Shown here one piece after another: positions 3,904 through 32,081 of a DNA stretch of 34,953 bases. Positions within the stretch are counted from its first letter, which is position 1. Every line of letters begins with the position of its first letter. The translations under genes were made by a program, and so were the position numbers. The stretch spans positions 1-34,953 of the forward strand of contig CAXNAD020000052.1 in assembly GCA_964200185.2 (NCBI GenBank), given 5' to 3'. Source of the DNA: Choristocarpus tenellus KU-1152. Taxonomy: Eukaryota; Protista; Phaeophyceae. The notes beneath the pieces were generated by a model, which was not told the origin of the DNA, made no database searches, and saw nothing but the letters and a program-made list of their open reading frames with translations.

Positions 3904-5982
3904 ATGCTCCACAGTATACATCCTAGCGAAGGTATTTAGGTACACATTAATTGTCATACCTAATCCAGAATTTGGAGCACGAAAACAACCCATGATACTC
4001 TGGAAGGCGATCAGATTTCATTTAATGAATTTTGTATCTTACTGGAATCTTTTTCTTTGGTTCATTTGCTTAGGATTTTCCGGAAGTCGAAGGGCACCCT
4101 CTCCGCTCAGTAAGTCAAAGGGCAAGAGTAAGAGAGACTGTTCCCCAATGAACCTCGTGAGTTTGGACCCCATCAACGCCAGACTTCTTTTCACGGAAAT
4201 CTGGTTTCGGTGATCCCACTCCACTTGGTGTTGACTGCACATCGTTGTACCATTAATAGCCCAGAGTTCAGGAAGATAATATCCCAGAAACATAGGAAAC
4301 AAAAGAGATTATTTGGGTCATATGATCAGGTCACAATGCTCTAACTAATGCAGCTGTGAGTGGGCAACAGTTATCCCCTAATCTTGGTTTTGGGTTGCGC
4401 TAGGCAAACACAACAGGTGTCCCAGGAAGAACTATATTGAGGCGTAGTGTTTGAAGGAATTGGATCTGTGATTGCCCTTTAAGGGTGGATTGTTCACCCA
4501 GAATTACGCCTCGCCTACCTGAGAGCGTAAGGTCATGTAATTTTTTTTTTGTAAGCAAAGGAGTTGTTCTCTCCACTTTGAGTAATCTGGACACAGTCTA
4601 ATACTTTTTCGTGGCAAATGAAATCACCTTTTCGCCTTTCTTCATACATTGCTGTTCGGTAGTAACCCCGACGTCCAGAGATCTGGAGTGGTGAGGTTCA
4701 CTTGTCTTCCAGTTCCAAATCTTTGGACGTTTGTGGAGCAGAAGCTATGCATCTGCCTGCGACGATAACTATCTCCCTCGACTGAGTGTTAATGTTAATG
4801 CATGTACATCACCGACTGCTGTATCTCACCTGTACTACTTCGTACTGTATCTCCCTCGACTGAGTGAGCTCAAGACAAAATAGACCCTTATTTCTTTGAA
4901 GAGGCAAACCAACAAAAGAACCGAGGGATCTCAACAATTCCTGTTCAAGACAAAATGGACTCAAATCTATAAATCATATCTTGACCATCCACTTCAGCTA
5001 GTCTTTTTAAAGGAATATTTGAAGAGATTTTAGATAATGTAGCCAAATATATGAATTAATCTCCACACTGAGCCTCTACCAGAATTTGTCTCCATACCAG
5101 AAGGCGGAACTCAAAAATTTGTGGAGCAAGAAATGCTATCTCCCCAGCCTTCGACTGAGAACAATCGTACGCAAACACCTCCAACCTCTTCTCCGACTTT
5201 TCAGGTTGTGAGTACAAGTCATGGGAGGACACAGCACTGACTTCTGATATTTCGACCCTGATGACGCGATTAGCAAACCGGACTTTCAATCCCATACATA
5301 CTCTCGCAACATTCACCAATCATCAAACAACGTGGTGCATCATTTTGTTACTGCCCTCACAGCCACTGTGTCACCACAGGGCTCTAGCAGACACCTTCAG
5401 ACAAGTACCACCGTAGTGAGGCAGGCAGGTCCCACCAAGGGTGAGTAGAATCCCCTTGAGAGCAAGTGACACTGAACAAACCAGGTTTCAGAGAGGCCAG
5501 CGATCATACCGTGACGAAAAGGAATCTGGATTGTCGGACCTGTTCGATGGTTCTCTGTCTACTACCAGTATTATGGAGATTTTTAGAACATATCTTAGCA
5601 ATGGTTACTAAATGATTTGGGCAATGTCAACGATAAAGAAGTATGAGCGTGGATATAATTATGACTGAGATCACTTCTTGACAGGACCCGTCTGTCACAT
5701 ATACAACGCAGTAACAAAATGGTGCATTTTACATCAGTACATATCTTTCTTAAAACTACCTCCAATAGGTAAGTAGTAATACAATATCCGTTTCACACCA
5801 ATAGGAGTGGAGGTTTCACAGAATATGAACAAGGAGATCAAGTTGCAGACAGACCTGCCCAATGAAAAGATCTACCTAGAACATGTTGAGGGACAGAGGA
5901 GGGCATTCTTAGTCCACCCCGAGGTGTGTGCTATCACTGAGAGTGGGTTTGCCATTCAAAGCACAGACAAGGGGTGTTGTCC

Positions 5983-6070
5983 TGACACAAAAGATTTGGG
6001 GGGTTGGAGGTGGTGGCGATTGTCCTTTTGGAGCCCTTTTTTTAAGTCGCAATTTTTTGGGTGACTTGGT
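5983..6070 (-). mobile_element. Degenerate partial MITE copy
   Basis: Resembles 24149-24240 (caaa..gggggg..tgtcc..ttgg..gtcgc.atttttt.ggtg). Confidence 0.5.
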
Positions 6071-7115: not shown

Positions 7116-10100
7116 TCAGTAGGCAATGCTCATATCAACATCCAAGATGGAGTTCCCACTTGGCCTAAAGGTAGTGATTGTTCCTCTCGCAGCTCTGTTT
7201 GCAGGTTGTCCATCCGATAAAGTTTTCACAACCTACTCTCCACCATAAAAAAGATCAAAAAATATATATTGTCAGTTTCAATCAACACTATATTTCGGGG
7301 GGTGGGGGGGGGGGGGGGCGGTTCCATNNNNNNNNNNTCGGAGGCGAGGTTTGTTTTTCGTGGGAAGGGGGCCGCGGAGGAAGCAGTTAGGGCGGTTCCA
7401 TTTTTACATGTTCACCTAATCAGATTTTACTACCAATACAAAACTTGAAAAGGAGCAAGCTCAGATGACTGATGTATTGTTTTATACCTTATCTAGACCA
7501 TGTTCCTAATACACACCTGTAAAAAATATAGCATTGCAACTTCTAGGAGGTTTGTGCTTAGCTGTACTAACAAAAAACAATAAAGATAGAAGCTAGAATG
7601 ATCTTCTAAATCAAATAAGAATCAGTTCGAGTACCACGATTGTTTGCAAGCACAACGACTCTCCACCCTTAGGATCGGAGGTAAACGAGTACCTTTGCTC
7701 GAGACTGGAGTATTATACCCATATTAATTTCTGCATGATGTTGAGATTGGCCATAGGGACGAAGACAGCCTCACAGTAAGACTCACTAGAAGGTCATGTT
7801 CATCATTGCCAACGATAGCAAAGAACATTTCATTGCAATGGAAATTTACAAAGTAAAAAACCTTGGTGTACATCGTAAGACTAGGTTAACTGTGCCGACC
7901 TTGAAGTAGGACACTAGTCGCCTCTGCACCAGGTCAAACCGCTCCAAGAGGCCGCTTTTCCTCTCCATACTACCTTCCCCCCTTGCTCGGTCTAGACTAG
8001 ACTTGCAAAGGGCAAACAGACGATCTATGGAGGCATACGGCAGCCAGTCCAACCCACCACCATCCTCCACGACCTGTTGACAGGAGAGTATTTGTATACA
8101 GTATTAAATAAGCTTAAATTTCAAAGAAAACCTCCTCTTCTGTCAACCGTAGAGAAACATCAAACAGTGTGAGATCATACTCATTGTTGCTATCGCTGAA
8201 CACAACCTTTTACTCAATCTGTTCACAGGTCAATTGTGTGTAGTGGCTGTCCCAGACCCCCACCTGATTTGTCACCAATTCAAGATCCACAGCACTTGTG
8301 TCTAATAACCGGGAGAGCAGGGAGCAGGCATCTTCTAAGCGCCCATCTCGTACATACCTTGAAAGGATGCAACACATTCAAGATTAAATACTGTTTTGAT
8401 CCATCAGTGCGCACACCGTGCTATCACTGCAGTGGGTACAGGCGTTGTACTGACCTTACACTCTAAACATGGAAAAAAGGGGACTGGAATAATTGACGTG
8501 ACTTCAAACTCTCTTTACATAAAGAATAAGAAGGACATTTCTTGAACCTACACAAATAGTACTTCTAGTTGTCTACACATTATCAAACCCCCAAAACTTT
8601 CCTTGCTTTACATAAACTCATGGAATAGACAGGGCGTATTACTTTACTTGTTTAGCAGTTCAATTTACAAACATGCATCAGTCATTGATCATCAACTTGA
8701 AATCACCCTTTATCAAAGATGCAACAGCAATAGGATTACAGCACACACCAACAGGTCATTCCAGCAAGAATATTTTTATGTTGATGCCCTTGTTTCTACC
8801 TCTGGATCTCACATGTTAAGAAGGATGGTTGGGTTTGCTACACCACATCCAAATGCCTTCCACGGAGCAGGTAGCCTAGAGGTCTCCGCTGGCTTTTCCT
8901 CCCCTTCTAAACCCCACGAGGTCATTCCTAAACAGCCTTGCTTCTGACCAATAAACGAGTCCTCTAGCCAATCAGGAAGCTGCTCCAGAGGCACAGGCCA
9001 TAGTAGGAAAGACAAAAAGAAGAAAAGATTAATTTGAAGTTACTATTGATCTAAAGGGTTGAAACAATTATTTTTTATGAAAAGACATCAAAGTGTTTAC
9101 AAGCGCAACGGCCCGCCACCCGTGAAAGACGAGGGCTAACGAGTGCTTTTGCTCGAGGTTGAGGACAGATATGTTCTCATTTTTCTGTGCACATCTGATA
9201 TTGGGACTTGCCGTGGGGGGTAGAACCAGCCAGTCTCACAGTATAACGTGCATGTGTATCATCAAAGTGTTTCATTTGTCAGACTAACACCCATCTATGC
9301 TATCAACCAATCAATTCTATGAGAAAGGACACACTTCATGCTGGATCAGAATCAACTGGACACCCTCTGGCTTGGCGGGGTCAGCTCTTTCAAGTCTAAC
9401 CATGGTCGGTCTTGCATGGGGAAAGAAGACTTCCTCATCACTTCCAGCTCAGTATTTTACCAGTCTTAAAACAAGCAAATCCCATACCTATTACAAACTA
9501 AGACCAAATAAAACAAAACCATACTAGGTTAACATAATCCAGATATAATGCAAAAATGTTTAACATTGCATGAAAATGGTCCCAACCCTCTTATGGAGAG
9601 GCACGTTTATATCATCGACATGTTGTGTGGAAATCTACGATATTTTGGGTTGTTGCACGACAACCTTAACAGCAATAGTGCAGCCACCTCATTCGAATAG
9701 AATCATGTTTATACTAATTGTAGCATGTGTACCTTCATAGATGGGGCAAGCTTCATCAACTCTCCAGCAGCAGTGGAATGGTATGAAAAGTTGTTCTGAG
9801 GTCCATCAAAACTTTCAACAATTGGCAACGGCAAAGGGCAGAATGCGAGCAAATAAGGGTTAGGGGTTATCTGCAAAAAGCCAAATAACTATTTCCACAT
9901 AGTTGGGACATTCATAATTTGAAGAAACCTACAGCATACATCTAATCAAACCCAGACAACACTCAAGAATACCTAAACTTAGAAAAACCGAAATATTTAT
10001 ATTAAAAATAATATCTCTTCGGCATGGACAGGTCTCCTTCAAAGGAATATTCCCACTCGAAATAGCATCCTGTTGAAATTACAGTTGTTGACATGAACAT

Positions 10101-19100: not shown

Positions 19101-22100
19101 CCCTGAGCAATACCCCATCCAAGGCAGAGGTTTCCTGGGTCTAGCCTGCAAGGCAGAGTATCAACAATCAAATGTCGACAAAGGGCAGAGATTGAGTTGT
19201 TAGACACTTGATGGTGCGCACATAGTTGAAAATTACAATAAACGTGTCAAGCACACAGTCCACAAACTTACTTCCAGACACAAGCAAACACACTACAATC
19301 GTGTTTTGGTGTGTACAAATTATCAAACGGTATCAAACGGAGAGTGATTGGCAAGTCTCAGGATTGACAACTTCAGTACCAGTACCACCTAACAAAAAAG
19401 GTGGGTTTTTTAAGAACCTGTGTGTCACACAGGTTTGTATGCCCCTGCAATGCGTGTGTCAGAGGGAAACTACCCCTGTTCCGCTTGTGTGCTAGTGCGT
19501 GGGTTTAATTTTGCACTGCTTTCTGCCCAACTATCGCATAGACAGATGGCTGAGCCACTGTCCGACTATGTCAGGGAGCTTGATACAGCGTGGTGAGATA
19601 CGACCAAATAGGCTCATCCTAAAATAACCTCTTCAACATGACATCCGCTCATATGCACATACTTGATCAGTAATGTGGAAGGTGCTGAGGAAAAAACCAG
19701 TAGGGCAAAAAACTTAAACTGACCCTACCCTGCCCATGTCTTACAGTTCAAGGTATTACATCGATTGCATCACATCTTCGATTTCTCACTTACAGTGTCT
19801 ACTGATACATTCTCCTTAATCACTGAACTAATGGAGTGTGAAGATTGAAGAATGGAAAAAAAGCATGCGTCATGTCCACGTTTCGTACCCTTCAACCAAT
19901 GAGTGCACGGCATCCATGACATCTCCCTCCACAGACAAAAGACGATCCACCTCCTGAGCAAGGAGAAAACCTCCATCACCTCCCCTACGAGCTTCTTCTG
20001 GTCTTCCTACCCCAAACAGAATCCGGTTCACCATTCCAGAGAGCTGTAATTAGCAATGAAACAGAAAGCAGGAAGCATAAGATAACCATTTACGCATAGA
20101 AGACTACACACTACACAAGGGTGTCAAAAGGATACGATCTCTATTGCATCTACTAGTAGGAAAGGTGGACATGTTTACATTTCCAAACAAAGCTATGACA
20201 AAAAATGAACAATAACAAAACCGCCAAAGCTTTCACTACTGTGGTCATGATGGCATTGATATTTCCCAACAGTGATACTTCCACCATATGGCAGAACTAA
20301 GCTTAAACTTCAGGCATCAATTCACAAGCCTTGAATCCCTTCCTACCATGATGAATAGTGGTGACATTTGAAAGAAAAATTTTCAAAAAAGGGGCTTACA
20401 AGACATAACTAAACAGTGTAAGTTGATACTCTATATAGCCTTACCATTCCTTGCACCCTGCCATCCAGAGTTTCTCCATCACCCCTGAGTCTCCACTGTA
20501 GGCCACCTGCACTCCTTTCCAAAGCCAACTCCACCGCCATGTCAAATGCTTGCAATGCAGAATAGTAAGGCCTGTCATGTGATTGTCGAGGATGTGTCAT
20601 AGTCCCTTGAACATTATCTCCAAGGCCATCAATTCTTTCATCTGATACCAACATAGCTGCCAAGGCAGGTTCCACCATAGACACCAGGGACTGCAAGGCC
20701 CCTGGGACACCTCCCCTTGACAGTGGAGGGGTAGCAGTTGGAAGCAGGAGCCCTGTCCGGCCTCTCCTCACCACCAATGGAGTGCCTTGAAAGGATCACA
20801 TGTTGGCGAAAGTGGCAACAAGGTATAGTTATTATTAAGCTCACAGAATAAAATATAAAACAAGGCATAGCTTGATGGCGACGCACTGTGAGGACAATCT
20901 CCTCACCCCTCTAACCTAGTACAAGATTCTACCTCTAAATACTTAAGAGTTGATGTGTTGTGACTCAGCAACATGTTTGAAACTTACCAGATGCAACATC
21001 ATGACCCTGGGCTAGTCCCATTGGAGCAGCCTCCACCCAAGCATATTCAGTGCACTTGGAAACAAAAGCTTTCCATTTATTGTGTATGGCATTGACGGCC
21101 CTCTTGATCATAACGGAGTAAATATTTGAGAGCAAGAGAATATTATTAGCTCCATGTAACACTTAAATTATCATTATTGCACGTGAAACAACATTCACTG
21201 TGAGGAAAAAACACTAGTTGACTCGGATAACTATTTAACATTTCAATGGTTTCTCTTTGAAATGTTTCTTAAGATCCATCATCATACACAAAATTTTCAC
21301 CAACCTCTGCTGCTGGAGATAAGACAACATCATCCCCTGCCACAGCCAGCTCAATATCCATAAGTAGGCTCTCATTAACTTCACGCATGCCTATCAGCAC
21401 CTGCAGGACCACTCAGACACAAGTCCACGATATTATCAATAGGAAAGAGGTGGATTTAACACAGATTTTCAAACAACTAGGTACATGCACCAGCTCATCT
21501 TTTGAAATGAATTCGTCTTTCTGATAATATGATTAAACCATTCAGATTAACAATGGCTTTATTTAGACAAATGACTTTACACTATTCAGATATCTTCAAC
21601 AAGTAGAACAGGAGGATAGGGCTCATAGCATAGATGACTTGTTTTTGGTGGCTTTGCTCACAGTGGATGCTGCCTTGTTTAATAATCGAGTTGGCGACAA
21701 CCTCACTAACAGATCCACCTTTCATAATCTTTGCCCATCCTTCCAAAGCCTTATTGGCCAAGGTGATGTTTTGTTGAAACAAAAAAACAAATCACAGCAC
21801 TTTGTGAAGGAAAAAATTACCAGTTTACAATTCTCACAAGAAAAAAGCACCCAAGTCATCACATATACTCTTCACATGGCAACTATCACCATCTTGATAA
21901 GCGCATAAGAATGGAACAAGAGTGTCTCACAAATAATCAAACAAACACTGAAGACTATTGGATGCAGTGAGATTGTACTATTCAACCTCGGTGCCTCATT
22001 TTATTTTATCTGCTCAAGTAGTGGACTCAGAATATTTGAGCCCCAATTTTGAGGGGCTTCTCCTCAACGTTGGAGACAACTACGACTCCACTCGGAGAGA

Positions 22101-25100
22101 TTCCCATTTTTAGATCGTCACTGCCCACAAATGAGCAGTTGGGCAAAAAGGAAGAGAAATATATACAAGCAAGAGGACAAATTATCTTCTCAACTAGTAG
22201 AAAAAAACTTAAGGCAAATTGGTAATATTCAACTATGTAAGGATCGGATGTGAAGTGAAAGATCAGTTCTCGCAACATTTCCGCATTCGACAGGACAAAC
22301 CTAAGGGATGCATTTGAAGGCATGTACTCAATAGCAGTTCAGTAAGAGTGTGATAGCTGCGTCACTATTTGAAGCGTAATTGAACACAATATTACATCTA
22401 CTTCTAGTCTTCAGCATGGAGGACTTACCCTTTGCTCCAATTCAGTCAAGGAAAGGAGATTTCCTGATACCCTTGTGGCATCATCACTCCTTCTCAGCTG
22501 TACGGTGAATAGAGTACCATCAGGCACAAACAAAAAGGTAACAAGGGACAGAAAAGAAAAAGAAAACATTATTAAACGAAGTAGCAAGTGAAATAAAATT
22601 AAATATCATAGTATTGAAAGAATAGTAAGGATGCACATTATTAAACGCAAAACAATTGAAAAATGCATCATTTGTAAAAAAAAATCTCTCTTTTCCTTTA
22701 TCGGCTTCAAGGCAGACCATCAGTAGTGTGCACATACTGACCACTAGAAAGCAACAAGACACTGGTTCAAACGACATTATAGCACAAACAAATCCACCTT
22801 TTATATATATTCAAGGCTAGCTTTTCTGATTGTGTGTGCATGCCATCAACTCATGAACCATCCCGCTACACACATTGCACTCGGAAAGACATCAATCATA
22901 CCATCTCCACTGCCGCTTGTGTTATCGCCCATCGTCCCATCCTTCCTGAAGACATCACTCTCCGTAAATGGAATGCCTCTATTATGCTCAGTGCCTCGAG
23001 GGCCATTTCAGTCGCTCTTGGAGCACCTGGACCAGTTTCCCCTTCAACAGCAATACTTGTGCTGTTGTTGGGACCTGTGGAGGACATGTGGGTTCCAACA
23101 AGGGCACTCCAGCTCCCTCCATGGTGTGCAAGAAGAGCACATAGTCCACTATCAGCTTTTACATCCTCTTGCAAGTGCTGTATGTTACGAGAAACAAGGA
23201 AGCATTGAAAGGTATGTGTTGAATTGATAATGTGTGCACAAAATTTACATATTTGTGGCACACTTCAACAAATGCATTGGCACATGTTCAAGAAGACTGG
23301 AATCTAGGGAGTCAATTACTCACATCAACTACCACGTCGTAAGTGGCAACATAAATTGAAAAGAGGCACAAAATGGACTAAACTGGTTTGGATAAGACAC
23401 AGGAGTGTTAGGTGCTCCGAAAACATCAGCACCAAAGAGATCATATGCCATGTTCCAATACACCAGTATTTAATCTAGCTTCAGCATGCAGGGGAGCCCT
23501 ACACAGTGACAGTGCTGACAAAGATTTATCATACATTGGCAGACTCTCTCGCAGGGCTCCCCTGATCTATACGAGCAACCTGATCAGAATTTTGCAATAG
23601 ATTCATTCGCAAATAGTTCAAACACCCTGAAATCTGGTACATGCAACATTGCGTAACAACAATGTGAAAATAATAGCAAATACAAAGCAAGTGATATTCT
23701 AAACGCACCACCTACAACAAATTAGGGTAATAAAAGACCAATCACCGGGAGACATTTATACTCTACAGACAACTAGGGGTACACACACCTGATCTATTGA
23801 TATCTCCTCAGATCCTTTCACCCATCTAATTACAGAGGCAGGGTTTTGTCCATCCTCTCCCCAACCTACCCCACCCCCTAGACCTTCCCTTCCAAACAGA
23901 GCATGACCACCATACTTTGCCAGTGACCCCGACCCATTCATGCTGGAAGACAAGTCTCCTCTTGCTAATGAGGAAATACTATCTGGGCGACCCCATAGAG
24001 CCCACACATTCAGGTCATTGTCCATCACAACATCTGTCAGTGGTCCTGTCCCAAGCATATTTAATAGGTGGAGTTAGGGCAACCATGAAACTTACGATAT
24101 ATAATCTGAGCATAACTTGGCAGCACAGGTTGTATAAAGTGTGGTGCCTCACTCAAAGCATCTGGGGGGGGAGGAGGGGGAGGGGCAACTGTCCATTTGG
24201 GGTCAAAATTTTCATGTCGCGATTTTTGGGTGGTTCGGTTAAATACATCAGATGGAAATGTAAGTGCATTTTTCCTGGCTGTGGTTCAAATGGACACCCT
24301 GGTGTAGACCCCCCCCCCCAGATACTTTGCTCTCATTACTTACATTTATACAGAAATAATTTTCACAAGTGAACATCCCACAGAGGTCAAAGGCAGGAAA
24401 AATGATTTTTTAGTTGAAGCACACAAGGCCTATTATTTAGTTTTAATATTTGTGTTACATGGGTATGGACCAAAAACTATGCAAGTAAATTCTTTCAAGT
24501 ATAGTTTAATAACAATTCATATAAACCAATACCTGCGCACCATGTTTTCTTCTTAGCTGTAGTTCATCTCTACTCCCAAAGAAACCACTAACACAAAGGA
24601 CAGTACAGTTCCTCAAATGCAATGTATACATACCACTGGATCCTGGAGCTTCCAGGAAAGCCTCTGGTTGCAGGTCAGTTCCATCAACAGCAACTGAGAG
24701 AGTTAAATGAACAGGAAGTCCTGAATGAAGGAAGAGAGTTTGTGGGTGAGGGAGACGATCACAGAAATTGTCCATTATTGAAAAGAATTGCACAAAACAA
24801 CTTCAATTGAACTCTGCAACCTATCCTACAAACTTCCTCTTCAACATCTGAACTACATCATACCATGCGCCCCCCAGCTTAAAGGGAGCAAAGGAGAACT
24901 GAGGGGATAATATATAGTTCAATATTTCAGAAACACAATTCCATCCTTAATGGAAACTCTTTGATGCTTGAGACCTCAGACATTTCATGATGATTCCGGA
25001 TGAAAGCGTTTCCTCAATGCAATACTGCATCAGTAGAGGGAGCTTTGTGTCCTCCTTGGTCATATCTAGTGTTTCCTATCCAATTAACCAAATACCTACT

Positions 25101-28100
25101 TCTACTATTCACATAATCATTCCCTCAGGTTAGGTCTTCCCTTCTATTCCTACCAAACCAATAATTTCAAGTCACTATCCAAGGCATTCATCCACAACCA
25201 CTACTCTTACACCCCACATATGCAATATTTTCACAAGCACAAAAGGTCTCTGACTCTTCATGTTGATTCCGGATGAAAGCATTTCCCCATATGCAATATC
25301 GCATCAGTAGAGGGAGCTTTTTGTCTTCATTGACCTTAGGAAATATTTAGGAAGATAATAAAAGCTTATTTCCACAACTCAATAAAAAAAAGACCTCAGA
25401 CTGTTCACATTGATTCCGGTTGAAAGCCTTCCCTCACGCACAATATCACATCAGTAGAGGGAGTTTTTCGTCTTCCTTAGCCTTGGCATGTGTACCCCCT
25501 TTCTCCCTAATGTGTTTGTTCAACAACTATATTTAATAATCACAAGTACAATTTGAGGAAAATATTATCCGAACTTGAATTCCCTTCAAAAACATCCGGA
25601 TCAAATCTTTATTAGACACAGCTCTCAACAATGCTATTACACCCAATACACAATGACTCTCACAAACAAAACAAAGGGGCCTACCTTATACCTCATCAGG
25701 CGTTACTCGTCATGAACTGAATAAAACGTGTTCCCTAAATCATTCTTCCCTTCCCGATTTAGTTATTGACTCGGATCTTATCAACATTGATGCACATAAT
25801 AAACCCAACGCATTGCCCAACAGAAAAAAAAGACCTCTTGACTCTTCATGTTGATTCCGGATGAAAGCATTTCCTCATGCACAATATCGCATCAGTAGAG
25901 AGAGCTTTTTGTCTTCCTTGACCTCAACATGGGTATCTTATTCTCTTACTGTCAAGGTGAGCAAAGCCTCTCCTGCAACTTCAAGATATACTCCTAAATT
26001 TGATTTCCCTTCAAATTTTCTTGTTTCATCTCTGTAGTAACCAACTGTCAACCTTCACATATGGAACAGACATCATATGCTCATACCTCCTGTCGCACCA
26101 ACCGCGATAACTAGGCAGACTCTTGGTTCCGTTCTAGCCTGTCTTTCAAAAGACCTAGAATCCATTTCATCATCCTCATCTCCAGATAGAAACAGTGAGG
26201 ATATGAAGCAAGATGAAGGGTCGACAGTGGAACCCTGAGGACGTTTGGTCAATGCATACAAAATGTTGACGAAAGGTATTCAGCGAAACACATGGCACCT
26301 TAAAAACAGCAAAAACAGATTTAAAACCTCTTATGCAATTTTGTGAGGGCAATTTGCAGTTGTCACTCAGTAGGATTCGTGTTTAACAACTCAATCTTCC
26401 CCACAGTTTTTCATATAATACAAGGTAGTGATATCGTTTGAGTGTGAAGGAATGAGATATATCAACGCGCGTATCAAAGGTTAAGTGCCTAGTATTACAG
26501 TCACAACACCATTGTTCACACTCAACACTCAAACCTAACAGAAGAACATACACGTTATCACCCATTTGCATTTCCAAAAGTCATCTCCATATAAACCCAG
26601 CTTTTCCCCAAGACTCAGAATCTTACTACTGAAAAATCAACAGTTTTAGACTCCAAATTTACTTTATTACACTCTCAAGGTACACACAGAGGTGATCAAA
26701 GTAATGAATACTTCAGCTTAGCATCTTATCACCAAAAGCAAATGTTGTAGAAATATATTATACCTATCCTTCGCTAATATCTGAACAGCTGATGATTAGG
26801 GTACTGAATAGCAAGCACATGATCTGGATAGTGATGTGTTCCAGGTGGATATTCAACAGGCTGCGAAATCTACCGAACTCGCTGCTCAAATGGCTAAGGA
26901 AAAGGCATAGAATCTCCCAAGCTTTCGGTGAGAATGAAAGTGAGTACCTATTCCAGGGCAGGGAATGGGGATCCTGTTGAGTGGTTTATTGAGTGATGTG
27001 GTTAATCAAGAGGGTAGTACCAAAATCGCATCTTACACACTGGACAAAAAGGTGCAGGACTCAGGTGAAAACTGAAAAAAATAGGAGGAGAGTATAATGA
27101 GTATAGGGATGGTCAGATAAAAAACGGAATTCCTACATATCTCGATTCTCGAGCAAATACCTGAGACAGTCTTAGACAGGGTCTGCAGTCTACACGACTG
27201 GTACAAGATCCTCTCCTTCCTCCAGCTCCCTCAACAGTCCATACCCGAATTGACCAGTCAGTGTGTAGACTTATCAGGATGGCATGTTGCTCCTAACAGT
27301 TGACAAGGTCGAAGAAGAGAACATTACAAGGTGTCAAGGCACTAATAGGTGGTGGGTACAAGGTGTGAAGGTGGTGGGTACAAGGTGGAAGGCACTGGAA
27401 GCTAGAAAGACAGATGAGTAAAACCTGATTCGCCTTACTAAAGGCAGTACTTCATATGGTTAACAATGAAAAAACAGTCTAGAACAACACAAAAAAAATA
27501 CTACGGATAAATTTTTCATGGAGTTGTCAAAAACTGAGCCAATAGCATTAATCAAGTCGAAATATTGTATTAGGAGCATTACCACTCAGTTACATGTGAG
27601 AAATTTTACCTCACTCAAGCTGAGAAGGCTCAAAAGAGTTGAAGAAGTAGGGTGATCAGGAAGACCTCCAAAGTGTAGAAGCATACTCAGAAGCAAATCG
27701 AGGAATCACTGTGGACAGTGTGATCATACAAAATGAGGTAGCAAAGAGATCAACTGCTTCGTATGGTGGTAAGGATTCTGATGCAGTTTAGGGCAAACGT
27801 TCTAGTCTAACACTTACCCTTTTTGTTACCAGAAGTAAAAAATATGTCATCATCTCCATCCCCACTCATTCATACGAGGATAGAGATTGCAACCTCACAC
27901 CGAACCTCAAAAGAAAAAGGTTGTATCAAGAGGGACCACAACTAAATGCAAATCCTGTTATCACTGGGCTAGTGAGGTTCAAAGCAATACAGGGCAATAC
28001 AGGGCAATACACAATTCCATCACATACAACATGACCTTATCGCTGTTGATAATGATGTTGCATTTGCAAATACATCATGTACAGCTGAGCTTGAGACACA

Positions 28101-31100: not shown

Positions 31101-32081
31101 CATGGTTTGGAACACAAATATGAAAACGACGTTACTAGCATGGCATGGACCAATCACCAGCAATACTTGAGTACTGTGTCAGGGCCTCAGAGCATATTTA
31201 GGGTTTTTGTACATCATACGGCAACAAGAGATGGTCATAACACGCAATAGATGCAAAAGTTGGAAAACGTCCAGACGAGGACTCAATCTTGTCTAGATTG
31301 TTCCAAGAGTTATCCACAAATCTGGAAGATCGCACGGATTGACATATTATAGTTCCTGTAAAGAGAATAGTTTTTAATAATCTCAATCTTCTGCCCTGTA
31401 ACAGGTACTCCTTGACTACAAAGATTGTGTACTGTTCTGCTTGCTTCTTAGAGACAACCACAGGATATGGGGGACATGTGTCAACATAGGTGCACTCAAC
31501 ACGCCTCCCTCGATGGACGACAAAGCAACTTCGCATGAAGCAGGTCATGTAAGATTACCAGTGGAAAAATTGAGGAGAGAGGTATCAGTTGTTCGAATTC
31601 AAAATGTCTTGGATCTTACACCCTTGCATAAAAAGGATAGGAACTAAACGGGTGCGTTAGCCCCGTACCTTGCAGACGAATGAAAGCCCTTGCCCCAGTG
31701 AGGTCCTTATCGAGACTCTGTTCCTCTAGCCATAGACCAGAACCGTGAGCCCTCCATAACAGATGACGTCTTCGATCACCAGGAAGGGCAGAACTGCAGC
31801 CAGACACATCATTCGCCTCCAGTGGAGCGGGGGGGGGGGGGGGAAGGGGGGCGATGCGCCCATCGCCCCCCCCAACAAAGGAAACCCCAACTCCCGCNNN
31901 NNNNNNNGATCGCGTCTCCCACCCCCGGGGGGGGAAGACCGGCCCCCACAAACATCTTCCCCCCCCGGGGGGGGGGGGGGGGGGGGGGAATGCGGTCGAT
32001 GCGCCCATCGTCACCCACAACTAAGGAAACTCCAACTTCCGCATCTTCTATGAATCCCACGTGTGTTTCAACCACCCCCAT
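7116..32081 (-). CDS. NUP160: Nuclear pore complex protein Nup160 (Nup120/160 family), 33 exons, about 1,800 aa
   Basis: Exons in transcript order, all GT-AG and phase-consistent: 32081-31669 (interrupted by an N gap), 30704-30544, 29804-29704, 28769-28691, 28477-28364, 27292-27161, 26234-26087, 24720-24634, 24045-23789, 23579-23535, 23177-22902, 22497-22429, 21400-21305, 21102-20988, 20785-20445, 20043-19889, 19145-18963, 18592-18520, 17423-17350, 16630-16319, 15881-15769, 15260-14906, 14042-13892, 13158-12974, 12530-12432, 12054-11397, 11104-11057, 10405-10260, 9811-9733, 8979-8813, 8357-8264, 8073-7900, 7232-7116 (TGA). Collinear Nup160-like motifs: RRHLLWRAHGSGLWLEEQSLDKDL..FTDQGIVHRI (propeller start), LHTDWSIRVW, FHLRRVMSSGRM, KWKAFVSKCTEY, AFHALCQNPNPSHRRENLSSLVRRMCDSGHLQDL, VNYYQCLHAFYVSRDDFVEAA, LPDWLEDSF..LLNMYVRDGRLEDACSLL, WLPYASIDRL. 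A few acceptor choices and the start codon are inferred. Confidence 0.9.
7638..7776 (-). ncRNA. Candidate box H/ACA snoRNA, copy A
   Basis: Diverged paralog of 9091-9241 retaining H box ACAUCA (7736-7741), loop strands CUCGUU / CGUUG and ACA (7641-7643); stems differ in sequence but still pair. Lies in intron 32. Confidence 0.52.
9091..9241 (-). ncRNA. Candidate box H/ACA snoRNA, copy B
   Basis: Hairpin, then H box AUAUCA (9196-9201), an internal hairpin, and a 3' hairpin with an internal loop (CUCGUU / CGUUG) 14 nt before ACA (9094-9096). Homologous to 7638-7776. Confidence 0.55.
9340..9448 (-). ncRNA. Box C/D snoRNA, SNORD12/snR190-like (LSU GGGGAAAGAAGAC antisense)
   Basis: Perfect 6-bp terminal stem GCUGGA/UCCAGC, canonical C box GUGAUGA and D box CUGA. 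The 13-nt element GUCUUCUUUCCCC (9418-9430) is antisense to conserved LSU GGGGAAAGAAGAC. Lies in intron 29. Confidence 0.82.
18135..18225 (-). other. Long intronic hairpin (about 30-bp stem), pre-miRNA-like
   Basis: tgtatcacctcagcttgatctgaatccttt ... aagggattagatcaaactgaggcggtaca; on the host strand the stem has two G-U pairs, two mismatches and one bulge. Confidence 0.4.
22021..22128 (-). ncRNA. Box C/D snoRNA, SNORD79 (U79)-like, LSU Am guide
   Basis: GUGGGC-a-GUGACGA (C)..UGGGAAUCUC-U-CCGA (D')-hairpin-UUGAGGA (C')..CUGA (D)-GUCCAC terminal stem. The 10-nt guide is antisense to conserved LSU GAGAUUCCCA; D'+5 gives GAG[A]UUCCC, the site I recall for SNORD79. Lies in intron 12. Confidence 0.8.
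24149..24333 (-). mobile_element. MITE copy, inverted, in NUP160 intron 8
   Basis: Reverse-complement match to 31-205, including both TIRs. Confidence 0.75.
24972..25061 (-). ncRNA. Box C/D snoRNA, SNORD100-like (18S Gm436-equivalent guide), copy 1
   Basis: Minus strand: GACC-a-AGGAGGA (degenerate C)..GCUCCCUCUA-CUGA (D')-hairpin-UGAGGA (C')..UCCGGAAUC..CUGA (D)-GGUC. The guide is antisense to conserved 18S AGAGGGAGC; the D'+5 rule hits the first G of GGG. Lies in NUP160 intron 7. Confidence 0.8.
25245..25335 (-). ncRNA. Box C/D snoRNA, SNORD100-like, copy 2
   Basis: GGUC-a-AUGAAGA (C)..GCUCCCUCUA-CUGA (D')..UGGGGA (C')..UCCGGAAUC..CAGA (D)-GACC terminal stem. Confidence 0.8.
25392..25482 (-). 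ncRNA. Box C/D snoRNA, SNORD100-like, copy 3
   Basis: GGCU-a-AGGAAGA..ACUCCCUCUA-CUGA..UGAGGG..CCGGAAUC..CUGA-GGUC. Confidence 0.72.
25694..25792 (-). ncRNA. Candidate orphan box C/D snoRNA within the intron-7 cluster
   Basis: CAUCA-AUGUUGA (C-like)..CUAA (D'-like)..AUGAUUU (C'-like)..CUGA (D)-UG; about 100 nt; sits between SNORD100-like copies 3 and 4. No convincing target recognised. Confidence 0.45.
25832..25923 (-). ncRNA. Box C/D snoRNA, SNORD100-like, copy 4 (degenerate D box)
   Basis: GGUC-a-AGGAAGA..GCUCUCUCUA-CUGA (a C>U change gives a G-U wobble)..UGAGGA..UCCGGAAUC..AAGA-GGUC. Confidence 0.68.
28182..28306. repeat. Minisatellite, 17-bp unit AAAGAGTACATGAAGGT, about 7 copies
   Basis: Directly visible tandem units in intron 5. 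Confidence 0.9.
30117..30199. repeat. Short direct duplication (~36 bp x2) in intron 2
   Basis: atccta.attccacaaggaa..gacaacggagatctt occurs twice. Confidence 0.8.

Follow-up and report, generated by a model that had tools for sequence, protein, structure and literature searches.

Candidate SNORD100/snoR30-like box C/D snoRNA genes with a predicted accessory 18S pairing in one NUP160 intron of the brown alga Choristocarpus tenellus

Two described box C/D snoRNAs provide the frame for this locus, human SNORD100 (HBII-429; RF00609) and plant snoR30/Z108 (RF00046). Their Rfam models both belong to clan CL00073 and carry an identical guide and D' string. SNORD100 is listed for 18S G436 (PMC12288042) and is an RNA with a single D' guide, encoded one per intron. 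In Arabidopsis, SnoR30 is assigned to guide 18S Gm392, the homologous site, and its D guide has been assigned to 25S Um803 (PMC8053127).

A second feature of interest is extra base-pairing beside the site of methylation, which van Nues et al. described and tested in 2011 (PMC3116282), HBII-429 being among the human cases. Such accessory guides, also treated by van Nues and Watkins in 2016 (PMC5389607), are known from yeast and human. They lie mainly in the second guide region, or else between D' and C', at a distance from D or D', sometimes overlap the guide by 1-2 nt, and stimulate methylation up to five-fold; those remote from D/D' are not expected to act as methylation guides themselves, and van Nues et al. 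also noted guide overlaps that may regulate methylation (PMC3116282). Both the RNA family and this kind of helper pairing are already described in plants, yeast and human. As regards organization, intronic snoRNA gene clusters were first found in rice (Liang et al. 2002) and then in Drosophila, as cited in PMC2780460. The brown-algal snoRNAs reported so far are computational predictions only (Ectocarpus; PMC4513859).

Here we describe four repeated units in a 34,953-nt window, the whole of the stretch analyzed, on contig CAXNAD020000052.1 of Choristocarpus tenellus (GCA_964200185.2). An earlier sequence-only reading had tacitly placed them in a plant setting; the source is a brown alga. In our view the units are probably four paralogous single-guide box C/D snoRNA genes, the functional counterpart of SNORD100 and snoR30/Z108, each predicted to carry an accessory guide.

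The host gene and its eighth intron

The host is a minus-strand gene of the NUP160/Nup120 family. Its annotated protein, P0001, maps to the minus strand by tblastn and contains the Pfam domains Beta-prop_Nup120_160 (49.1 bits, cut-off 30) and TPR_NUP160_120_M (48.6 bits), which bears out the initial identification as NUP160. The intron that houses the units (24720-26085, minus strand, 1366 nt, GT..AG) is delimited by the joint 24719/26086 of a spliced contig from run X3, with CT..AC ends. It is flanked upstream by coding exon 8 (26086-26233, minus strand; spliced contig pieces, tblastn residues 265-318 of P0001) and downstream by coding exon 9 (24633-24719, minus strand; spliced contig joints, residues 315-347). 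Mapping the exons of P0001 by tblastn makes this the eighth intron of the annotated coding sequence, and not the seventh as previously numbered.

All four units share the minus strand with the host gene and lie inside this one spliceosomal intron. Repeat searches, alignments and covariance-model matches confirmed the description of four host-strand repeats of about 90 nt separated by unrelated spacers. Searches by BLAST, by pattern and by covariance model found no further copies in the 164-Mb assembly, so the dispersed high-copy repeat that would have argued against snoRNA genes is not what we have here. The NUP160 gene of another brown alga, Pylaiella littoralis, contains no homolog of the units, a covariance-model search included, and for this reason the location is not conserved among brown algae.

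The intronic clusters of rice and Drosophila likewise group several genes within a single intron of a protein-coding host, in sense to it; unlike those, all units here are paralogs of a single family and the host is a brown-algal nucleoporin gene. The arrangement likewise differs from the one-per-intron organization of SNORD100, and the host organism is a stramenopile. In the RNA-like run X3, coverage extends over the full length of the host intron at depth 8-20 and the spliced mRNA contig has a depth of 244, while three neighboring introns are at or near 0 outside a repeat. This coverage is a hint of expression, and it should be read as coverage by assembled contigs, which carry no information on discrete 90-nt RNAs, RNA ends or strand. 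No run registered as RNA contains the locus.

Anatomy and divergence of the four units

All coordinates in this section are on the minus strand. Copy 1 (24972-25062, 91 nt; Rfam snoR30 at 18.8 bits, model R1 at 111 bits) has the C box AGGAGGA (25050-25056), the guide GCUCCCUCUA (25034-25043), D' CUGA (25030-25033), C' UGAGGAA (25010-25016), the accessory element UCCGGAAUC (24992-25000) and D CUGA (24976-24979), closed by a 4-bp terminal stem, GACC/GGUC. Copy 2 (25243-25337, 95 nt; Rfam SNORD100 at 27 bits, E 0.0045; model R1 at 127 bits) reads AUGAAGA at the C box (25324-25330), followed by its guide (25308-25317), D' (25304-25307), a degenerate C' UGGGGAA (25283-25289), the accessory element (25265-25273) and CAGA at the D-box position (25249-25252), within a 6-bp stem, AAGGUC/GACCUU.

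Copy 3 (25390-25484, 95 nt; model R1 at 115 bits) consists of the C box AGGAAGA (25471-25477), the guide ACUCCCUCUA with its first base altered (25455-25464), D' (25451-25454), C' UGAGGGA (25430-25436), the accessory element ACCGGAAUC (25412-25420) and D CUGA (25396-25399), with the stem AAGGCU/GGUCUU. In copy 4 (25829-25924, 96 nt; model R1 at 118 bits) the C box is again AGGAAGA (25912-25918), the guide GCUCUCUCUA (25896-25905) has a C to U change that gives a G-U wobble at guide position 6, and D' (25892-25895), C' UGAGGAA (25871-25877) and the accessory element (25853-25861) precede AAGA at the D-box position (25836-25839).

It is important to note that the copies are not uniform, contrary to what had been implied: two guides and two D boxes are altered and every C box is non-canonical. 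None of the four has the canonical RUGAUGA, one or both U positions being replaced with both GA dinucleotides retained, and box D is CUGA in copies 1 and 3 only. D' is CUGA throughout, with C' as UGAGGAA, UGGGGAA or UGAGGGA. The GA dinucleotides of the C and D boxes, which are needed for the kink-turn, are retained in all four copies, and we infer that snoRNPs could assemble on these unusual boxes. Terminal stems of 4-6 bp are likewise present in every copy (91.7% of cells paired with one double change, short of significance for four sequences); over the stems, 90% of cells are paired versus 31-72% in slid controls. Stem covariation is indistinguishable from shuffles, there being four sequences only, and the predicted folds show no greater stability than shuffled sequence (z −0.07 to +0.98).

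When 4227 Rfam models were searched against the 1.3-kb region, the only matches at E <1 were SNORD100 (27 bits, E 0.0045) and snoR30/Z108 (18.8 bits, E 0.56). The SNORD100 likeness proposed from sequence stands as far as the best matches go, and falls short in that no copy reaches a gathering score (27 versus 58 bits for RF00609 and 18.8 versus 60 bits for RF00046). Together with the anatomy, these matches support box C/D snoRNA-like genes with the SNORD100/snoR30 guide. Like SNORD100, the units carry the identical guide and D' string GCUCCCUCUACUGA, are intron-encoded and have a single D' guide, predicted to target the 18S Gm436 equivalent; unlike it, their C and D boxes are non-canonical. 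With snoR30 they share the D' guide GCUCCCUCU, a similar C' box (UGAGGA in the plant RNA) and the homologous site Gm392.

The RNA bodies are 74-89% identical, their 60-nt flanks 41-61%, the level of shuffled sequence, and similarity among units ends at the RNA boundaries. The leading alternative, which we consider unlikely although it deserves attention, is that only some copies are functional, most likely copy 1 and perhaps copy 3, the others being decaying duplicates in which an altered D, C' or guide blocks snoRNP assembly or guiding. This would fit CAGA and AAGA at the D-box positions of copies 2 and 4, the UGGGGAA of copy 2, the guide pair lost in copy 3 and the wobble in copy 4; moreover, the metagenome homolog described below shows that canonical boxes exist in the family. 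However, the two copies with altered D boxes, 2 and 4, are the most alike pair (89%) with flanks at only 41-52%, which argues for constraint or gene conversion after their split, and no copy has lost its GA dinucleotides, its terminal stem or either antisense block.

Pairing with 18S rRNA

The D' guide is GCUCCCUCU, followed by A-CUGA, in copies 1 and 2; the consensus given in the sequence-only reading thus holds for these two and not for copies 3 and 4, which have one change each (ACUCCCUCU and GCUCUCUCU, respectively). The 9-nt guide ends 1 nt before D'; eight perfect pairs remain in copy 3, and copy 4 has a single wobble. Opposite the initial G of 18S GGGAGC stands the fifth nucleotide upstream of D', in keeping with the assignment of D'+5 to the human Gm436 equivalent.

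The accessory core CCGGAAUC does not vary among the four copies; the base before it is U in three and A in copy 3. It sits between C' and D, ending 12, 12, 12 and 13 nt before box D in copies 1-4, and, preceding U included, is complementary to the 18S stretch that adjoins the guide duplex on its 5' side. Guide and accessory element each match neighboring parts of 18S as perfect antisense over 8-9 nt, with one A common to both, and together they are antisense to 17 contiguous bases, just as the claim of two abutting halves of one stretch of about 17 nt had it. Among 200,000 shuffles of the C'-D interval, 871 (0.4%) gave an antisense match of at least 8 nt no more than 12 nt from the guide duplex. 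An intact 18S gene was not found in the assembly, which holds decayed rDNA-derived copies only; the majority consensus of three of these is identical to the 18S 17-mer that had been quoted.

Units transcribed within the NUP160 pre-mRNA would be released from the eighth intron, and the 9-nt guide upstream of D' would pair with 18S AGAGGGAGC. The fifth-nucleotide rule would then place 2'-O-methylation by fibrillarin at the leading G of GGGAGC, which corresponds to Gm436 in human and Gm392 in Arabidopsis. Within the second guide region, which has no other use here, (U)CCGGAAUC would pair with 18S GAUUCCGGA, sharing one A with the guide duplex and extending this short 9-bp pairing to about 17 bases in all, on both sides of the C'/D' motif; we propose that methylation efficiency would be raised as a result. 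Its location (in the second guide region, 12-13 nt from box D and abutting the duplex) is what suggests the accessory-guide role, and it agrees with the earlier view that the element lies outside the D+5 rule and behaves as an accessory pairing. That view further held that the element might open this 18S helix or take the place of the vertebrate Um428 guide, and that the units might be freed by endonucleolytic cleavage.

The same location argues against the element being a true methylation guide within GAUUCCGG (e.g., for the vertebrate Um428 equivalent, which by arithmetic from G436 it does span) that would operate through a cryptic D-like box such as the (A/G)UGAA motif after the element in all copies. 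There is no CUGA-like box 1-2 nt downstream, the metagenome homolog reads AAAUUAUUAU at the motif position instead, in Arabidopsis no 18S Nm site is listed from G246 up to G392 (PMC8053127), and accessory elements at such a distance from D/D' are, in the published account, not expected to guide (PMC3116282). We regard a second guide as very improbable.

The accessory pairing is not new in kind, contrary to what had been implied. Extra base-pairing was published in 2011 with HBII-429 included (PMC3116282), so that a conserved extra pairing with rRNA is a further likeness to SNORD100, the human case being compared here by its listing. The elements in Choristocarpus resemble the accessory guides of van Nues et al. 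in being conserved, complementary to rRNA, beside the methylation site, in the second guide region and overlapping the guide by 1 nt; they differ from those yeast and human cases in belonging to a stramenopile and in that a stimulatory role is here predicted from sequence. In snoR30, too, C' is followed in the Rfam consensus by an accessory-like GAAUCGAAC, which is antisense to 18S GUUCGAUUC and overlaps the same GAUUC. The register is shifted, however: plants pair with GUUCGAUUC and the Choristocarpus RNA with GAUUCCGGA. Unlike snoR30 with its D guide to 25S Um803, the Choristocarpus region before box D is unconserved, its 12-13 nt differing among copies, and does not resemble the plant consensus.

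A metagenome contig (Ga0209906_100714, hereafter L021) contains two homologs with canonical CUGAUGA and CUGA boxes. They occupy a pair of short consecutive introns, one in each, within a clathrin heavy chain gene whose product is 39-58% identical to Choristocarpus exons. The L021 pair has the same guide, D', C' and accessory blocks, the last about 10 nt from box D, and differs in its canonical boxes, short D'-C' loop and single copy per intron. The long blocks that do not vary between the two sources are the guide plus D' and UCA(U/A)CCGGAAUCA; exactly the two antisense blocks are conserved in a second, unrelated eukaryote.

This comparison also bears on the bases just upstream of the accessory element. 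The second region together with an upstream GCU(NN)CA could form a competing, near-full-length 18S antisense of regulatory character, or fold back onto the 5' edge of the guide to close a helix within the RNA. All four copies share an unchanged GCUUUCA, and GCU..CA is seen again in the L021 homolog and the snoR30 consensus; AAAGC/GCUUU is paired in the predicted folds of copies 1 and 2, L021 has GAGC/GCUC at the same positions (a compensating change), and van Nues et al. do note possibly regulatory overlaps (PMC3116282). Yet the folds, as given above, are no more stable than shuffles, two lineages yield only one covarying event, and the wobble-rich pairing to 18S 436-441 requires a bulge. We judge this alternative improbable, less so than the second guide. 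Least probable of all is a non-functional local tandem repeat with coincidental box-like and antisense features, which the non-canonical boxes and sub-threshold Rfam scores might suggest, given two abutting antisense blocks on one of the most conserved 18S stretches, similarity restricted to the RNA body, the same two blocks kept in an unrelated eukaryote with canonical boxes, and best Rfam matches to the two families that guide this very site.

A stramenopile member of a known family

On their sequence features, we consider these units to be probably real snoRNA genes, adding one more member to a family already described. They would add a stramenopile to a methylation-guide family known from animals and plants, and the current picture of how box C/D snoRNAs work and are organized is unchanged by them. 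Their value lies in a clean comparative case, in which the guide and an accessory pairing of the kind described by van Nues et al. are equally strictly conserved between very distant eukaryotes, with brown-algal copies that appear to tolerate unusual C and D boxes.

Two broader points are offered tentatively: that the accessory pairing of SNORD100/snoR30 may be as old and as constrained as the guide itself, and that brown algae may build functional snoRNPs on C boxes without both uridines and on CAGA-type D boxes. The former is based on a pairing that is the same base for base in a brown alga and an unrelated eukaryote, occurs in a shifted register in land plants and is reported for the human RNA. 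If true, it would point to a requirement set by local rRNA structure, in the helix 13 region, that is older than the split of the major eukaryotic groups.

The intronic array and its host gene

Read over window positions 24700-26200, the four related units have a box order that is sensible on the minus strand only. The four-copy array put forward in the sequence-only reading was borne out by a repeat search and two MAFFT alignments; from stem to stem, the copies lie on the minus strand at 24972-25062 (copy 1), 25243-25337 (copy 2), 25390-25484 (copy 3), and 25829-25924 (copy 4). With a covariance model made from these units, each copy scores 111-127 bits and the window yields no further unit, and nhmmer detected no decayed units in the spacers, such as a 147/441-nt spacing had hinted at.

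From 5' to 3', each unit opens with one short strand of the stem and continues with a heptamer resembling box C (AGGAGGA, AUGAAGA, AGGAAGA, and AGGAAGA in copies 1-4), a spacer rich in A, the guide (copy 3 has ACUCCCUCU and copy 4 GCUCUCUCU in place of GCUCCCUCU), an A, box D' (CUGA), a small hairpin, and box C' (UGAGGAA, UGGGGAA, UGAGGGA, and UGAGGAA). Then come an invariant GCUUUCA and, directly after it, the second conserved or "accessory" element, (U/A)CCGGAAUC. After it, 12-13 nt of variable sequence lead to box D, which is CUGA in copies 1 and 3 but CAGA and AAGA in copies 2 and 4, respectively, and the second stem strand completes the unit. Because all four C boxes and two of the D boxes are noncanonical, some copies may be weak or dead; against this, copies 2 and 4 both have an altered D box, yet they are still 89% identical while their flanks are randomised.

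Of the cells in the terminal stem and the D'-C' hairpin, 90% are paired, a share that falls to 31-72% with the partner slid, a difference that with four sequences is inseparable from shuffles. Folding energies are no better than those of shuffled units, and stem covariation did not reach significance (n=4 sequences). Directly 3' of the terminal-stem 3' strand there is a U run, of four U in copy 2 (25233-25242) and eight in copies 3 and 4 (25380-25389 and 25819-25828, all minus strand), which may be a processing or protein-binding signal, or merely pyrimidine-rich intron sequence.

Identity among the RNA bodies is 74-89%, compared with 41-61% in the 60-nt flanks, a value that shuffled sequence also gives; the similarity therefore stops where the RNAs are predicted to end. 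Searches of the 164-Mb assembly by BLAST, by the covariance model, and by a pattern joining guide and accessory element found only these four copies. A dispersed high-copy repeat, the outcome that the sequence-only reading had named as fatal to its case, can be set aside because there are no copies elsewhere in that assembly. One extra pattern match, in contig C15671, has no boxes and was attributed to chance.

The locus is present in three runs, two of them DNA-like and the third (X3) RNA-like with spliced contigs, and in none of the runs recorded as RNA. A 971-nt contig of X3, at a depth of 244, skips 24045-24632, 24720-26085, and 26234-27159, with CT..AC ends at each skip; the three segments are GT-AG introns of a minus-strand gene. 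Searched one by one against Pfam, the host exons gave no usable match, and a weak Streptophyta lead from an Atlas search with the long exon was misleading. Against the representative library, the long exon retrieved P0001 (1793 aa), 100% identical over the exon and recorded at NCBI as an unnamed protein product of Choristocarpus tenellus, a brown alga. P0001 passes the Pfam cut-offs for both Beta-prop_Nup120_160 and TPR_NUP160_120_M, which identifies the host as a NUP160/Nup120-family gene; another protein that the representative search gave, P0002, is a bacterial HYR-domain protein with no relation to it. When P0001 is mapped to the window, the cluster falls between coding exons 8 and 9, that is, in intron 8 and not in intron 7 as originally read.

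Other features of the gene should be recorded here. The next NUP160 intron holds a very high-copy repeat (24170-24437), whose summed word depth is ~10^4 in each of the three runs; loose ends are numerous at 24189, 24319, and 24329, and translated motifs resembling it recur at 1-546. Other introns of NUP160 contain two box C/D-like candidates, also on the minus strand and both closed by a 6-bp terminal stem: 9340-9447 (GUGAUGA ... CUGA) and 22021-22127 (GUGACGA ... CUGA); neither has an Rfam match. Short N runs, seen as X in translation, occur at ~31800-32000 and ~7300-7350 beside proline/glycine-rich repeat translations; they represent sequence that was masked or withheld.

Family relationship and predicted 18S target

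No Rfam family reached its gathering threshold in the window. With E-value reporting, the whole-window scan gave a match to SNORD100 only, and over the 1.3-kb region the best match was SNORD100 (27 bits, E 0.0045), followed by snoR30/Z108 (18.8 bits), both below gathering level. A plus-strand snoR44_J54 match at 24885-24970 (E 4.6) was taken as chance. SNORD100 and snoR30/Z108 belong to one clan, and the consensus guide-plus-D' string of both is that of the Choristocarpus units, whereas the D guide of the plant family has no equivalent in them. SNORD100 is given as the guide for G436 in helix 13 of 18S (PMC12288042), and SnoR30 is assigned as the guide of Arabidopsis 18S Gm392 and likewise of 25S Um803 (PMC8053127). 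Taken together, the sub-threshold scores and the common guide and D' suggest a divergent functional counterpart that is a non-member by the Rfam score criterion.

BLAST and pattern searches of the assembly found no intact 18S/rDNA, only decayed 18S-like copies (contigs C9714, C4430, C8146, and C5582; L001-L005). The sole near match to the 17-mer quoted earlier as conserved 18S lies inside the C9714 copy; the others are 76-82% identical to that copy, with universally conserved positions mutated. The majority consensus of three decayed copies is exactly GAUUCCGGAGAGGGAGC, which equals the quoted 17-mer. The guide matches AGAGGGAGC in antisense over 9 nt without a mismatch, with the first G of GGGAGC paired to the fifth nucleotide upstream of D'. 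The accessory UCCGGAAUC likewise has 9 nt of perfect antisense match, to 18S GAUUCCGGA; the two duplexes thus abut with one A in common, much as the sequence-only reading had described. When C'-D intervals were shuffled, an antisense match of at least 8 nt within 12 nt of the guide duplex arose in 0.4% of trials.

The proposed accessory element

Van Nues et al. (2011, PMC3116282) described conserved elements of snoRNAs that pair with the rRNA directly next to the methylated position. The elements lie mainly in the D'-C' interval or in an unused second guide region, do not adjoin the D/D' box, in some cases share one or two nucleotides with the guide duplex, and raise methylation up to five-fold; the 17 further human cases that the authors name include HBII-429 (SNORD100). 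The second element of Choristocarpus has every sequence feature of such a pairing. At the corresponding place, the Rfam snoR30 consensus has GAAUCGAAC, antisense to 18S GUUCGAUUC, so the same GAUUC is overlapped in a shifted register. An alternative is that the element itself guides 2'-O-methylation, inside 18S GAUUCCGG; its distance of 12-13 nt from box D speaks against such a role, which we consider very improbable.

Further support for an accessory pairing comes from a metagenome contig, Ga0209906_100714 (L021), the single contig with matches in one exact-pattern scan of metagenome contigs. Both of its matches, at 5350-5439 and 5977-6064, were aligned by the covariance model and are identical to each other. 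Their boxes are the canonical CUGAUGA and CUGA, whereas the Choristocarpus C boxes are noncanonical; guide and D' are the same, C' is AUGAGGA, and UCAUCCGGAAUCAA stands ~10 nt before box D. Each sits in its own intron, the two short introns being successive ones in the clathrin heavy chain gene of a eukaryote. This clathrin shares only 39-58% identity with the clathrin exons of Choristocarpus, and its alignment with the mammalian clathrin heavy chain scores 534.5 bits over 413 residues, on which grounds we take the organism to be no close relative. When all six sequences are aligned, the long blocks that stay invariant are two, the guide with D' and the accessory element, and the remainder has diverged. 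This two-block conservation is the strongest evidence in the analysis that the accessory element would be functional.

A conserved GCU(NN)CA just 5' of the element (25274-25280 and equivalents; 5397-5402 in the metagenome contig) could form a helix with the guide's 5' edge (AAGC/GCUU in Choristocarpus, GAGC/GCUC in the contig) or, if wobbles are allowed, with the methylation site in 18S.

In the NUP160 gene of Pylaiella littoralis (protein P0007, locus L012), no unit homolog was found by pattern, nhmmer, or covariance model, which makes the location lineage-specific. A weak nhmmer match and two guide-like matches there were read and judged to be chance. A DDE_1 transposase gene is called at 46688-48234 of that locus, within the 48.5-kb range of the gene.

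Expression and processing

In X3, the cluster intron is covered over 24763-26081 at a depth of 8-20, and bins in the other three introns range from 0 to 1.6, the high-copy repeat excepted. This coverage fits a longer-lived intron or precursor, contigs being blind to discrete RNAs, their ends, and their strand. The 3' end of the first unit lies 252 nt from the 3' splice site, and the gaps between units are 53-344 nt. The vertebrate one-per-intron release route cannot apply unchanged to such a cluster. Intronic snoRNA clusters occur in plants and Drosophila (PMC2780460, citing Liang 2002 and Huang 2005), and by analogy with them endonucleolytic or spacer-directed processing is a reasonable inference.

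The core of the sequence-only reading, a SNORD100-type guide with accessory pairing in an intronic cluster, was right. Both features have already been described, and the brown-algal units add to a known kind of snoRNA in an under-studied lineage.
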